A stretch of 5,520 nucleotides of DNA, taken from assembly GCA_016748015.1 (NCBI GenBank), contig JAAOMT010000378.1:1-5520 (forward strand), in the 5' to 3' direction. Each line of letters opens with the position of its first letter. The first letter of the stretch is position 1. Both the position numbers and the translations under genes were made by a program. Source of the DNA: Geosiphon pyriformis uo1 (Eukaryota > Fungi > Glomeromycota). The notes under the pieces were generated by a model. That model worked only from the letters and a program-made list of their open reading frames with translations. It made no database searches and was not told where the DNA came from. This document shows positions 1 to 5,520 of this stretch, in pieces.

Positions 1-23
1 CCCCCCCCCCCTGCCCCCCCCCC
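1..23 (+). repeat. 5' poly-C tract (C11-TG-C10)
   Basis: Read directly from the sequence. Confidence 0.95.
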
Positions 24-1306
24 AACCTGGGTATCTCACCCAAACCAACCTCCCCAAATTACCTACTCCTCCCAAATCCCCCAAACTCCCCCATTAATGG
101 GGGTACATCTGTGGTAACTCTGGGATCATGGATCATATCCTATCCACCTATTTGACTTCTGCTTTGTCATTACCCTCCCTCCTATCGATTTAGGCCTTAA
201 TTTTGCCTATTTCTAGGGGGGCCCCCCCCCCCCCCTTACTTACCCTGCCCATGCATGCTGGAACTTACTGCTTCGCTCACGCTACTACCTGGAACTGGGG
301 GGGGCCTCAGCTCTATTAGCAGCCCTCTCCGGGGAGGCGCGTACAGGTTGTTAGATAGGTATTGATCTTACCTTTACACAGTGATCTCCTTATTAGCTAA
401 CTCTTGGTTCGGACGCGTCTAAAGCTCCTTCACCCGTCTAACCCTTCCTATCCCTATAACGATTCGTACGTAATGGTCTATAGATTAGACATGCCTCACT
501 CAAACCCTTCCTCCACTCCATTCGTAGTGCTTACTCCCTCTTTGGTCCCTACTCCATTTAACCTCCCTACTCCCTCTGTTTATAGACGCGTATCTCCCCG
601 ATCCCGATTTATACCCCCCCCTGTTGTTAAATAGTGGTCCTTTGGGGAGTGCTTGGTTGAAATGATCCTATTGGTCTGCCTATTGTTAGCTGTTGCGTTG
701 TGTTTGGGGTGGTTGTGGGCACTGATTCTAGAATGTTAACCCTTCTTAGCTATGGACTTCCTATCCACTATCCTCATATGATTCTTCTCGTGGAGTACTT
801 TTGCTTAGAGAGTTGGATCCCCTGACCTGTGGTCAATACTGATACTCTCGTTGGAGTTATTACCTTTATTAGGTTACCCGGCATGTCTATTATCCTTCTT
901 TATGCTTGGATTGCATTTAAGGGTTCCTTTGTTTGGTTGGTATCCCTTGAACCTGCTCGATGGATTCCTATTCTTCTAAATCAAAGAGCCTACTTTAGGC
1001 CTGTTAGGTCCCTATTTGCTCTTGAGGATTGGAGTGTTTTATGGTTATCCCCCCCTTTGTTGCAGATAGTTACCATTTGGTCCCATTGCTAACCCACCCC
1101 CTCTCCCCTAGTTTGGCCATTAAGCTTACCTCCTTCTACATCTTGGATATTGCTCCCCATACCTTTGGTCCTTGGTAGGGAAGTTGATCTCATCTTGTAC
1201 AACTCAGATAGTTTATACCTCTTCCTCTTATCCTCTGGTCCCCAACTGTAGGTTGTTATACCCAATTTGCAGAGCTTATAGGTTCCTTATGGCTTCCTAT
1301 CTACAT

Positions 1307-1336
1307 CCCCTATCTAGCCTCCACTAGACTGAGTGG
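1307..1336 (-). repeat. Perfect 30-bp inverted repeat, left copy
   Basis: cccctatctagcctccactagactgagtgg is the exact reverse complement of 3117-3146. Confidence 0.97.
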
Positions 1337-2094
1337 GATCCAGCTCCTTTGGTACTTTGATTATGCCTTAAGATGCCCCATCTCCGAGCTTCTGGTAGCC
1401 CCTAGCTATCTGATCATCCCATGATGGCTCTCCTCCCCTATGGTTATCCTCTGTTTACCCTTGGGGCGTCTCAATGCTTATTTACCTATCTGTAGGAAGG
1501 GTACCGCCCCCCCCCCACCCGAGGTTGCCATTGCTGGCCCTGTATGGTTAAAGCAGTTTACTCATTGAGCTATCATTATCCCTGGTGATCCCCTATCGTT
1601 CAACTTGGTGATCCCATTTATGCGCATCACTGTGGATTTAACCATCAGGTGTACAATCTTAGCCTCTTGTCACCCCCCCCCATTCTTCCACTGCCTTCTC
1701 GGGCCTATCTGCCTTCTTATGGCCCTTTGTGCCCTCTTTACCCTAGGGCTTTGACCACCCCTATGTGCTTAGGTTGTTTGGATTATGAGTTTGGTTAGTT
1801 GGATTCATGGTGTCCTTACCTTATAGTATTTTTACCTGTTCTCATATGTCCAGTCTCTACCCACTTCCTTATGGGGGTTGGCGAGCCTTATGGCTAATAC
1901 TAGTCCCTTACTTTGATACACCCTCCTACCACTTGAACCTCCATTCACTTTGCTTACCTTAGTACTTCACTAGTGGTATTTGCAAAAGCTCCTAATACCT
2001 TTGGGATAGAGTAGATCCTGTTGAGCATTGTGATGGTTGGTTTACCTACCACTCCTTCTTATTAGCTTTAGGTACCCTGTTGACCTGCTATTCA

Positions 2095-2186
2095 CACTTT
2101 GGGGTTTACCCCCCCCCTATTTGGCACTCCTTTAGTAGTGGTTTGGGTTAGGCTTGTGGTATTTTAACCCCTGCAATGGATGGTTA
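2095..2186 (+). repeat. Diverged direct repeat, copy 1
   Basis: Colinear exact blocks shared with 5123-5218: cactttggg, cccctatttggcactc (2114-2129), tattttaacccc, tggatggtta. Confidence 0.9.
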
Positions 2187-2323
2187 GCTTTGATTGGCTT
2201 TGTGACAGATTTCCCCTTTGTACTGTTATTGGGTTGTTGGAGCTGGTTGTTGGCTTTGGTAGGTTGATTGGGGTTCCTATTTGTTCCTGAATACGAGGTT
2301 GGGTTGAATTGGTTGTGGCTAAC

Positions 2324-2635
2324 TCATTTAGTAGGCTTACTGCCCCTATGGTTATTAGATTCTTGTTTGTCAGTTGAACATTGGGTGTACAGTGGGATTG
2401 GTTGTCCGTTTGTTTGGTTATGGCTGCCTTTTATTTGGTTGATACCTTTGCGTTGGTTGATGGTCCCTGTAAGTTCCCATACTTCCTTTATTAGGTGTTT
2501 AGTGTTGTATTCACTATGAAGGCTTGTATCACGCGCTAACCTTTATATGTAGTTATATCTGTTATTGGGTAGCAGGCTTGTCCTCATTGGGCTTCTTGTT
2601 ATTCCCCCCCCCTATAGGACTTTTGTGGAGCTCAT
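2324..2635 (-). CDS. Hypothetical 103-aa ORF under table 6 (MSSTKVL*GGGITRSPMRTSLLPNNRYNYI*RLARDTSLHSEYNTKHLIKEVWELTG...), probably the 5' piece of a longer broken minus-strand ORF
   Basis: ATG at 2635 (minus) lies beside the skew switch. The frame has one TAG and one TAA and is otherwise open to TGA at 2326-2324. No homology recognised. Confidence 0.3.
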
Positions 2636-3116
2636 GGGTTTGGGACGCCCACTAAGCACATAAGGGATAACGGGATAACCAAACCAAACCCCCCCCCCAA
2701 CATCCTCCCGCCAACCGAACCCGACTTCGAGCTAGATCCACATCAACAAGGCCACGATACCAATCAAGCGTATAGTAGCCCTCAGGTACGGGGAGGTAAT
2801 GAAGGTAGAGTAGGAGGGGGTGGGTGAGGGGAGGTCAATAGAGGCTATGATTCAACTCCATATAGTCAAACCCACCAGTATATCTCCCAAGCAAAACGGA
2901 GTACTACCATCAGGGTCCGAGGACAATAGGAGGGGCGATACACCACACCATAATGGTAAATGGGAGACAGAGTGGATTTTGCTCTAAGAGATGGGGTACC
3001 ATCCAAATCTAAGTATAAGGGGAGATGGGTAGCTAGTACCCCCCCCCCGTCGCTGGCTAGCTCGGCTGGATGTGGAGGCTAGAGGCAGAATATGGAGTCA
3101 TTGGGCTATAGCACCA

Positions 3117-3146
3117 CCACTCAGTCTAGTGGAGGCTAGATAGGGG
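3117..3146 (+). repeat. Perfect 30-bp inverted repeat, right copy
   Basis: ccactcagtctagtggaggctagatagggg; contains a small ccact-N6-agtgg hairpin. Confidence 0.97.
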
Positions 3147-3313
3147 CATCTCGTAACAGGGCCCAGTTTGATGTAAAATCTAGAGCCAATAAGTAATCTA
3201 CCCCCAATCGTGAGCCTTGGGGGGGCCTCAGAGGCAGGATCTCTAGCTCCTAGCCGCCAGGCTGGGGGGGCCACAAAACCCCCCTAATAGGGAGTGGTAC
3301 CTACGGGTCCCAC

Positions 3314-3343
3314 CCACTCAGGCTAGGGAGGCTATATCTGGGG
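3314..3343 (+). repeat. Third, diverged copy of the 30-bp motif
   Basis: ccactcaggctag-ggaggctatatctgggg versus ccactcagtctagtggaggctagatagggg; lies 197 bp downstream of the 3117 copy. Confidence 0.85.
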
Positions 3344-4205
3344 TGGACAGGGGAGGTCATAAACCCGATCCGGGCTAACTATTGCAAACCATTGCCCCGC
3401 CCAGGGCAGGGAGTTAGATGAACAAGCAAGTTCAGGAGTTGTACATGAAGCGAAATTTCTTACAACCAGAGGGGGACCAATTGAGGTCGAGGGTAGTGGC
3501 GGAAGAGTAGATGGGGAGGGTAGAGTAGCTATTGGTGGGGTGTCTAACCCCCCCCCTAACCCTAAAGAACTTGGTAAATGATCAACCTAGTAGTAGGCAA
3601 ATCAATGGGTGGAGAGCCAACCGACCCCACCCCCCCCCCCTCTAGTAGCTAACAAAGGGGTACCTGACCAGCCTTAGGCAGGATCCTGAGTCAGAGGCAA
3701 GTGAGAAGGGGTGACAATGGGTAGAGATGGGTATAAAGCTCAAGTATGGGGACATACCTCAAACCCAGCAGTAGTGGCTTAGAACCATAGCCATGAAGGT
3801 AGTAGTTTCGGAAAGAAAGGGCATCCAAATCAATCCATCCGATAGCCATCCCAGAAGAGCATCTAGCCCTTTACTCAAATAAAGCCAAGGCACTATCATC
3901 AAAGCGAGCCAAAGCCTTAGAGTATAGGCAAACCACCCATAAATAAGTATAACACCCAATATACTAGTACCCAACGATATGACTTACAAGAGGATTGGGG
4001 ATAAATCGTATATCCCAGCAAGAATGAGAGCCCTGAGTAAGGATGGCCAAGACCAAATGCTACTTCTGAAATCTACCAAGCAAAGGCCCCTGCCCGGAGG
4101 GCATGGGGGAAGGGCGGGTCTCCAAGTCCGCACCCCCCCACTCCCCCCATCACCAACACGAAACCGGGAGATAGAGAATGGATAGAGCCAGTTTGAGAAT
4201 CCAGG

Positions 4206-5163
4206 ATGAGAATTGGAACCCAAGTAAGGGATCCATAAGATCCCCAACAATAACAGATCAACAAATACTTAGTTAGAATGGATATAAGGCTCCATAAGTT
4301 ATGGAGGAGTATTAGGGAGCTCTATCAACACACAGCACACCAACTATTACAAATAAGCGAGGCGTACCTAGTGGAAGCCATTATAATCAATTCCCACCAT
4401 TACCCAGGATAAAGCCCTGGCCAAATCAATAAGTTTATCCAATCCATCCAAGTCATCAAATAAGGCCAATAACCGTACATTAGTAATAGGATCTCTATCG
4501 ACAAGCCCCAGGCAGGCGGAGAAACGCCCACTAACAATCCCGCATAAAGGATAGGATTCTCCAAAGTATGCTACTATAAATCATGAGACCCATATACCCA
4601 ACCATCAACCAATAACAATATTGTTTTAAGCAGGCAAGGGAGTGGGGCAAGCCTGGAGAGCAATCTGGCGAGAAGTAATAGTAAATCAACGTAAGTACAT
4701 AGAGCTGGATTATAGGAAGTATTATGACCAGCTGAGTAGAGCCAATCCTTAACCACCTAAAAGAGTTGGGGGGGGGAACAATTGACAAACGAAATAGGTA
4801 GGGCAATCCAACCTCTAATTAAGGAGTCACCCCGGTAAATAATGGGTACACAAAGAAGGGCTACCAGTGCTCTAACCTCAGCCCACTACTGTCAATCATA
4901 AGTCTGTAGATCCAACAGGTATACGACTCAGACCAATACAAATATGTAGGGTACACAGATGATTCTATACTATCAATACCAGATAGCTCCCAACAACCAT
5001 AGAAGCAGCACTAACGGACCATAATGCAGGCACAAGGGAGTGGCACTTAACTAAAGGAACGTCAAACCCCAACCAGTACGAAATTCCATTCCTGGGCCTC
5101 AAATACAACACCCAAGATTTGCCACTTTGGGTATTCCTACCCCTATTTGGCACTCATTCTTGA
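4206..5163 (+). pseudogene. Frameshifted reverse transcriptase (retroplasmid/group II-like RT domains 0-7), read with TAA/TAG=Gln; pseudogene or recoded cryptogene
   Basis: Frame 3 from ATG 4206 reads MRIGTQ...INKYLVRMDIRLHKLW...AHQLLQISEAYLVEAII...IKQGQQPYISNRISIDKP (RISIDKP at 4488). Frame 1 then gives KRPLTIP (4522-4542). Frame 2 gives DRILQSMLL*IMRPIYPTINQ*QYCF (4550-4627). Frame 1 gives AGKGVGQAWRAIWREVIVNQRKYIELDYRKYYDQLSR (Asp at 4708). Frame 2 gives PILNHLKELG. GLP is at 4858-4866 (frame 1). Frame 2 gives QCSNLSPLLSII...YKYVGYTDD (YTDD 4952-4963). Frame 3 gives GVALN (5037-5051). Frame 1 gives EIPFLGLKY (FLG 5089-5097) and ends at TGA 5161-5163. Motif order and spacing match known RT domains. 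The true start may lie further upstream. Confidence 0.88.
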
Positions 5164-5218
5164 TTCTGATCGATAGTTGGGGCCTTTATTTTAACCCCCC
5201 CCCCTTGGTGGATGGTTA
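5123..5218 (+). repeat. Diverged direct repeat, copy 2
   Basis: The same four blocks occur at 5123-5131, 5140-5155, 5187-5198 and 5209-5218. Confidence 0.9.
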
Positions 5219-5488
5219 CTCTTAAGATGTCGATTTGTAGGGGTTGGAGGTATATTTGGGGTGCTTTAGTAGCGATGGTAGAGAGTTTAGGGGTGCGAGC
5301 GAGGCGTAGTTGGGGCGCTAGCTAGATGTAGATTTGGTTGAGACTCGAGGTATCTGCCGTAACCTTTAGAGATGCCCCCTGTTTGACCCCCCGGGCCACT
5401 TACCCTATTGGTAGCTAAGTACTATGCTTTGACCCTCCATTTGATACCTATTTGCTAATCCCTTTACCTCCATTTCGTATCTGCCTCT

Positions 5489-5489
<1 letters not shown>

Positions 5490-5520
<31 letters not shown>
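5490..5520 (+). repeat. 3' poly-C tract (31 C, runs to the window end)
   Basis: Read directly from the sequence. Confidence 0.95.

Follow-up and report, generated by a model that had tools for sequence, protein, structure and literature searches.

The window, i.e., the whole stretch of DNA analyzed here, is the entire contig C116 (5520 nt) of the 128-Mb, 792-contig assembly of Geosiphon pyriformis, and its longest ORF comprises 95 aa. Strings resembling a reverse transcriptase (RT) can be recognized by eye in three frames of the forward strand: RPLTIP, KDRILQ, GKGVGQAWRAI...YIELDYRKYYD, NLSPLLS, VGYTDDSIL, and FLG. Is there a reverse TRANSCRIPTASE? To this question, tools that depend on open frames were blind, and a frameshift-aware alignment was needed. 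Pfam gave no match for 20 stop-free pieces of the window, and sequence searches of the PDB with three RT pieces returned chance matches only. A 40-aa piece yielded nothing but chance LYR matches in the ESM Atlas and 0 matches by phmmer against 1.84 billion representative proteins. Neither this piece nor a 91-aa antisense ORF produced candidates in a search for homologous proteins, and a metagenome scan with a 58-aa piece revealed no relative. The description of the RT as invisible to ORF calling, given in the initial annotation, was thus borne out, with Pfam and PDB both blank. Searches of the whole assembly gave a similar picture. Matches to PF00078 were dominated by nuclear retrotransposons and left the window unscored, and a frameshift-blind search with a group II RT profile missed the window, its sole match being a weak one on contig C95. 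As plain hmmsearch on six-frame translations was nearly blind as well (≤ 3 bits per frame), we wrote a frameshift-aware aligner, which proceeds in codon steps and tolerates, but penalizes, frame changes and stops.

The profile was derived from 58 group II intron-type RTs that were collected from viral contigs via a degenerate motif pattern. Against this profile, the frameshift-aware alignment scored 86.0 bits over nt 4305–5115 of the forward strand (profile positions 34–331). When the A-rich half containing this region was shuffled with its dinucleotides preserved (n = 150) and scored identically, it reached 31.2 ± 4.3 bits with a maximum of 42.7 bits, and the reverse sequence, the other strand, and the remainder of the contig remained at a background of 18–32 bits. 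The z-values across the shuffle controls ranged from 12.8 to 17.1 (17.1 for the second shuffle set), and a z of 9.8 was retained under harsher penalties. The score is carried solely by nt 4488–5115, spanning motifs 1–7, which account for approximately 81 of the 86 bits. The empty single-piece searches of Pfam, PDB, Atlas, and the 1.8-billion-protein phmmer set would fit a motif pattern that merely arises by chance within A-rich DNA. This explanation is refuted by the shuffle controls under identical scoring, and it is further contradicted by motifs that are colinear and correctly spaced, so that we attach practically no probability to it. The homology of nt 4488–5115 to RTs is statistically solid.

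The motifs of domains 1–7 had been reported to occur in order across three forward frames, and both the alignment and the motif coordinates (Table 1) confirmed this; the positions given for the catalytic residues (Asp 4708 and YTDD 4952–4963) proved exact. Within the block of motifs 1 and 2 (4525..4564, forward strand), a frame change separates RPLTIP from DRILQ. In motif 4/B, columns G226, P228, Q229, S234, P235, L236, and L237 are retained, whereas G230, G231, and N239 are changed to C, S, and I, respectively; SPLL lies at 4880–4891 in frame 2 of the forward strand and is separated from YxDD by a gap of approximately 20 residues. In total, 28 of the 43 invariant profile columns (≥ 95%) are kept (0.65). 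Among the lost ones are G in YGF, R and P in FRP, G in PQG, and R in RYADD, corresponding to the degradation of YGFRP to YCFKQ, of PQGG to PQCS, and of RYADD to GYTDD. When single pieces were submitted to hhalign, two of four were placed at the right profile positions (P 0.0025 and 0.14), the former value belonging to piece 4630–4749 at profile positions 149–182, and YKYVGYTDDSIL was aligned to fVRYADDfvI. The piece 4254–4409 was not placed at RT0 by hhalign.

Table 1. Coordinates of the RT-related features, the direct repeat, and the poly-C junction within the window.
Feature	Position (nt)	Strand	Remarks
RT core (fingers and palm, motifs 1–7)	4488..5115	+	Profile alignment; 8 frame changes, 7 of the 10 in-frame stops
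Possible N-terminal/RT0 region (LLQISEAYLVEAIIINSHHYPG), weak	4305..4487	+	Adds 4.5 bits; 3 in-frame TAA
Motif 1: RPLTIP, frame 1	4525–4542	+	R113, L115, I117, P118 retained
Motif 2: DRILQ, frame 2	4550–4564	+	D122, R123, Q126 retained
Motif 3/A: IELD Asp at 4708, Y-D at 4723–4728, frame 1	4708..4728	+	D176, D182 retained; F181 changed to Y
Motif 4/B: G-L-P / Q-C-S-N-L-S-P-L-L-S-I-I-S-L	4858..4906	+	Frame change within; QGG eroded to QCS
Motif 5/C: YTDD, frame 2, both catalytic aspartates	4952..4963	+	Y274, D276, D277 retained; R273 changed to G, A275 to T
Motif 7: FLGLKYNTQ (FLG at 5089–5097, frame 1)	5089..5115	+	L324, G325 retained; RT similarity stops here
Direct repeat, copy at RT 3' end	5123..5158	+	At RT 3' truncation and switch from A-rich to T-rich
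Direct repeat, other copy	2095..2132	+	81.6% identity over 38 nt, 16-nt exact core
Poly-C contig end	5490..5520	+	Joins the poly-C start (1–23); X1 Logan contig is a circular permutation

To assign the remnant to a class of RTs, we used two comparison profiles, one of DGR RTs, built in the same way as the group II set, and one of nuclear Ty3-type RTs from the Geosiphon assembly. Both were weaker than the group II profile: the DGR profile scored 61 bits (z 10), and the Ty3-type profile 45 bits (z 2.8, falling to −0.6 with harsh penalties). A joined, X-masked peptide, used in local scripts only, found its best single match among group II-type RTs (39.7 bits, compared to 13.5 bits for DGR RTs and < 0 for nuclear RTs; highest identity, 26%). 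The group II profile had also been used to pick the joining path, which favors group II-type RTs. In a maximum-likelihood tree, the peptide fell on the group II side of the split between group II and DGR RTs (SH-aLRT 99), where it branched basally within the group II-type RTs, a position without resolution, on a terminal branch of 5.77 versus a median of 0.35. The remnant shares the motif set, order, and spacing of group II-type RTs (RPLxIP, DRxxQ, D..F/YD, PQ...SPLL, YxDD, and FLG), including a YGFRP-like block in degraded form. It differs from them by its 8 frame changes and 10 stops, and by lacking the thumb/maturase (X), DNA-binding, and endonuclease domains. DGR RTs have the general prokaryotic RT fold in common with the remnant, which is why their profile also detects it; however, the remnant has SPLL instead of the DGR-type motif 4 with SQ. 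Judged by its sequence, the remnant belongs among the group II intron-type RTs, broadly understood, which are of the prokaryote–organelle type; on this point, the initial annotation is supported.

A mobile group II intron is not represented in the window, which contains no uninterrupted ORF, no thumb/maturase (X) domain, and no detectable flanking ribozyme domains (D1–D6, especially D5). No Rfam group II family was detected at E ≤ 1 in the window or at E ≤ 10 in region 3600–5520, a search that a decayed RNA could escape. For GIIM and Intron_maturas2, the readable assembly returned only sub-threshold matches at chance level (E ≥ 0.3, on nuclear contigs), none of them in the window.

The path of the RT through the window is interrupted by eight frame changes, located approximately near 4521, 4546, 4644, 4747, 4796, 4821, 4867, and 5091. 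The frame order 0,1,2,1,2,0,1,2,1 corresponds to six +1 and two −1 changes (P 0.29), and the sites have no common sequence context and do not lie in long homopolymers. Ten in-frame stops (eight TAA and two TAG) occur on the path, resulting in a stop density of approximately 3.6–3.7% versus 6.8% in the off-path frames, and there is no start. Sequencing error is an unlikely source of the frameshifts and was rejected: an independent contig assembled from short reads of run X1 (Logan, depth ~63) matches the window letter for letter outside a poly-C run, and the breaks lie outside long homopolymers. On the 3' side, the alignment stops at position 331 of the 409 profile positions, without any match to the thumb/maturase (X) columns. 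This end of the RT similarity coincides with a switch in base composition and lies beside one copy of a direct repeat of 36–38 nt, the 16-nt core of which is unique to these two copies in the assembly.

We compared these values to a simulation of decay, for which ten held-out intact RT genes, excluded from the profile, were mutated toward the local base composition and provided with indels. At d = 0.3–0.6, the simulated genes scored 62–168 bits and displayed 8–11 frameshifts, 2.2–3.4% stops, and an invariant retention of 0.51–0.64. The observed values were a score of ~86–87, 8 frameshifts, ~3.6% stops (just above the simulated range), and a retention of 0.65. In terms of this model, neutral decay of a canonical or somewhat divergent ancestor can account for score, stops, frameshifts, and retention. 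In addition, Gln encoded by CAA or CAG makes up 10.3% of the residues on the path as compared to 3.9% in real RTs, a surplus reminiscent of drift driven by base composition. We infer that the breaks were caused by neutral decay, and consider it likely that nt 4488–5115 (perhaps from 4305) are a truncated, neutrally decayed fragment of a dead group II intron-type RT gene, passively carried on a mitochondrial-type minicircle. According to this reading, the gene would have lost its function and drifted neutrally toward the A-rich composition of its strand, acquiring 10 stop codons and a minimum of 8 indels that break the frame, and the sequence 3' of motif 7 would have been lost at a rearrangement marked by the short direct repeat. 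The remnant would yield no protein and would persist as a passenger on circular or tandemly repeated DNA of ~5.49 kb.

The structure of the carrier can be deduced from the short-read data. The Logan contig of run X1 (depth 62.8) corresponds to the window in two blocks, its positions 1–3702 matching window positions 1775–5476 and its positions 3716–5520 matching window positions 1–1804. It is therefore circularly permuted relative to the window, which makes the unit of ~5.49 kb either circular or repeated head to tail. The forward strand is T-rich over 1–2640 and A-rich over 2641–5115. The A/T skew flips sharply at ~2640 and ~5115, roughly half a circle apart, a pattern to be expected from one origin and one terminus or from a pair of diverging transcription units. 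Several further elements were noted on the circle. A perfect 30-nt inverted repeat (1307–1336/3117–3146) has its arms 1780 nt apart, and a third copy with 76% identity is found at 3313–3362. A G+C-rich hairpin at 4087–4157 has chance microRNA-like matches in Rfam, and its part 4087–4120 matches a short palindromic repeat present at ~6x the depth of the circle in run X1. Scans for tRNAs and Rfam families found nothing in the window and the other circles. The idea of a kinetoplast minicircle was also checked, and rejected, as the universal minicircle sequence is lacking.

The window is not the only contig of this kind. Many small contigs share a GC content of 43–49%, strand-specific poly-C or poly-G runs, and the lack of long ORFs. 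Runs of at least 8 C (or G) occur about every 400–700 nt and are nearly one-stranded per contig (window, L013, L016–L021, and L023–L025); poly-C and poly-G runs number 14 and 2 in the window and 19 and 1 in L018, and L017 and L021 contain G runs only. Contigs of this class tend to break within such runs. Exact terminal overlaps of 255–1291 nt were identified in five of them, namely L016 (C60), L017 (C72), L020 (C82), L023 (C65), and L024 (C69), which imply circular units of ~8441, 7575, 7265, 6612, and 8447 nt, respectively. These five circles have almost no sequence in common with each other or with the window. Only two sizeable blocks are shared between circles (L016 2608–2820/L020 1492–1685 with 81% identity and L021 5502–5688/L023 4442–4633 with 95% identity), and they may be common functional elements. 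The Logan depths of two other such contigs (60.6 and 120.8), together with that of the window (62.8), come close to a ratio of 1:2:1. Tetranucleotide usage of the window correlates with that of the other small circles and a contig carrying nad4L (0.67–0.90), whereas the correlation with nuclear loci is 0.09–0.35.

This nad4L gene is located on C52 (L255 1492–1761, reverse strand, corresponding to G000:C52:6105–6374; Pfam 53.7 bits). It has an intact frame of 89 codons without frameshift or in-frame TAR, uses TGG for Trp, and ends in a TAA stop at the expected length. The presence of nad4L on C52 indicates that the circle class is mitochondrial in type, and the composition and contig class shared with C52 point to a mitochondrial location of the window circle as well. 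The encoded protein is very divergent, with best database matches of 35–36% identity, and its nearest Atlas clusters are mitochondrial ND4L proteins of non-fungal eukaryotes. In the readable assembly, cox1, cob, and nad2/4/5 were not found; contigs C105, C106, C108, and C117 consist mostly of N between G/C-hairpin repeats, so that little can be read from the absence of these genes. It is conceivable, although on balance doubtful, that the circle and its whole family do not stem from the mitochondria of the fungus; the source would then be another eukaryote isolated along with it or contamination of a single library. Besides the non-fungal affinity of nad4L and the lack of the other mitochondrial genes, this would agree with a composition unlike that of the nuclear genome and with the restriction of the window sequence to run X1, since runs X2 and X3 of the same sample contain none of its words. 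However, X2 and X3 may derive from RNA or from libraries of yet another kind, and the missing genes may lie in the N stretches of other small contigs. The identity of the RT remnant would be the same under either origin.

We also evaluated the proposal of a hidden working RT gene that uses a code with TAR = Gln (table 6). A working gene would demand that TAA and TAG are read as an amino acid and that the frame is restored via RNA editing or programmed frameshifting, which we regard as very improbable on the basis of the sequence. Several features count against decay, some of them in favor of a working gene. Nearly all catalytic residues are kept (the Asp of motif A, YxDD, RPLxIP, DRxxQ, SPLL, and FLG), and a retention of 0.65 lies near the upper limit of what the decay implied by score and stop count would leave. 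Furthermore, all ten on-path stops are TAR, with zero TGA, and six of the eight frame changes go in the +1 direction. Neither of these biases is significant: TGA makes up 14% of the off-path stops, resulting in P = 0.22 for zero TGA among ten on-path stops (Fisher P 0.57), and P is 0.29 for six versus two frame changes. As TGA is rare in every frame here, its absence carries little weight. Code 4 changes nothing for the RT path, since the path contains no TGA and TAA, TAG, and the frameshifts remain, and reading TAR as Gln would raise Gln to 13.6% of the protein. The eight frame changes are not accounted for by any code and have no motif in common, nothing follows motif 7, and to our knowledge, RTs do not function without the thumb domain. 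For nad4L, which lies on a contig of the same class, no repair of the frame is necessary, and the gene ends in TAA without in-frame TAR, which weighs against recoding in the circle class, and X2 and X3 contain none of the sequence. Together with the decay simulation reproducing the observed numbers, these results left both the TAR = Gln code and the working gene unsupported. Slimmer still are the prospects of an expressed RT whose eight breaks would be repaired by insertion/deletion editing or ribosomal frameshifting, with TAA and TAG read through, which would make it a cryptic gene residing in the multipartite mitochondrial genome of a mycorrhiza-type fungus that diverged early. Reading the RT as a fossil disposes of the attractive notion that a gene lies hidden here behind a variant genetic code.

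Another point concerns the ancestry of the dead RT. The initial annotation had called it retroplasmid-like, a call to be dropped upon placement inside ordinary group II maturases or LINEs; the basal position in the tree neither refutes nor supports it. The N-terminal segment that the initial annotation had cited for this likeness lacks statistical support, even as an RT0 motif. An origin from a circular mitochondrial retroplasmid of the Mauriceville/Varkud type, instead of a group II intron ORF, would make C116 a dead retroplasmid, copied by the host or by an RT in trans, and appears unlikely to us. Circles of the Mauriceville/Varkud type have a size of ~3.6–3.7 kb, which is exceeded by the 5.49 kb circle, and no tRNA-like element was found by ARAGORN (a weak test). 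An RT remnant on a small circle would fit such an origin; however, small circles are the general architecture of the contig class, including the one with nad4L, and because they are typical for this class, the circular carrier is no evidence of plasmid origin. Likewise, the remnant is basal to the group II-type set and not nested within a bacterial class, but the very long, decayed branch can explain this position. No group II ribozyme or maturase remnant was detected, which is compatible with a retroplasmid, as is the literature, where retroplasmid RTs are placed beside group II intron RTs in a broad group II-type branch and where retroplasmids contain a single RT ORF and no other gene (PMC12737674). 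The fungal mitochondrial retroplasmids (the Mauriceville/Varkud circles and the linear plasmids pFOXC, pThr1, and that of Botrytis) resemble the window in being small extrachromosomal DNA of mitochondrial type with a group II-related RT as the sole recognizable coding remnant (PMC12737674). They differ in possessing a complete RT ORF in mitochondrial code and in replicating through their RT, whereas the ORF in the window is destroyed and its circle is one of many similar circles, mostly without RT. Regarding the ends, Mauriceville has a tRNA-like 3' end and pFOXC has clothespin ends with telomere-like repeats; the molecule here is circular instead of a clothespin, which is again a weak test. 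A further likeness exists to the alpha-senDNA of Podospora anserina, a group II intron with an RT ORF that is amplified as circular DNA and arises in senescence. Both are circular mitochondrial DNA with group II-type RT coding sequence; however, intron and ORF are intact in senDNA, whereas the window lacks a ribozyme and its ORF is decayed.

Taken alone, the RT remnant is an ordinary retroelement pseudogene. It records that a retroelement of group II type, be it an intron ORF or a retroplasmid, was once present in this mitochondrial-type genome, and it is useful as a neutral marker, indicating that much of these circles drifts freely. More interesting is the carrier, a family of circles of 5–9 kb that have strand-specific poly-C runs, are nearly devoid of ORFs, and encode at least one conventional mitochondrial gene. 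When 14 other small contigs were checked for a second RT fossil, all were at background. The match on C95 from the whole-assembly search with the group II RT profile (G000:C95:1332–1511, forward strand; 19.2 bits, E 0.02, profile positions 134–188) includes one TGA and may mark a further small contig with a fragment of an RT.
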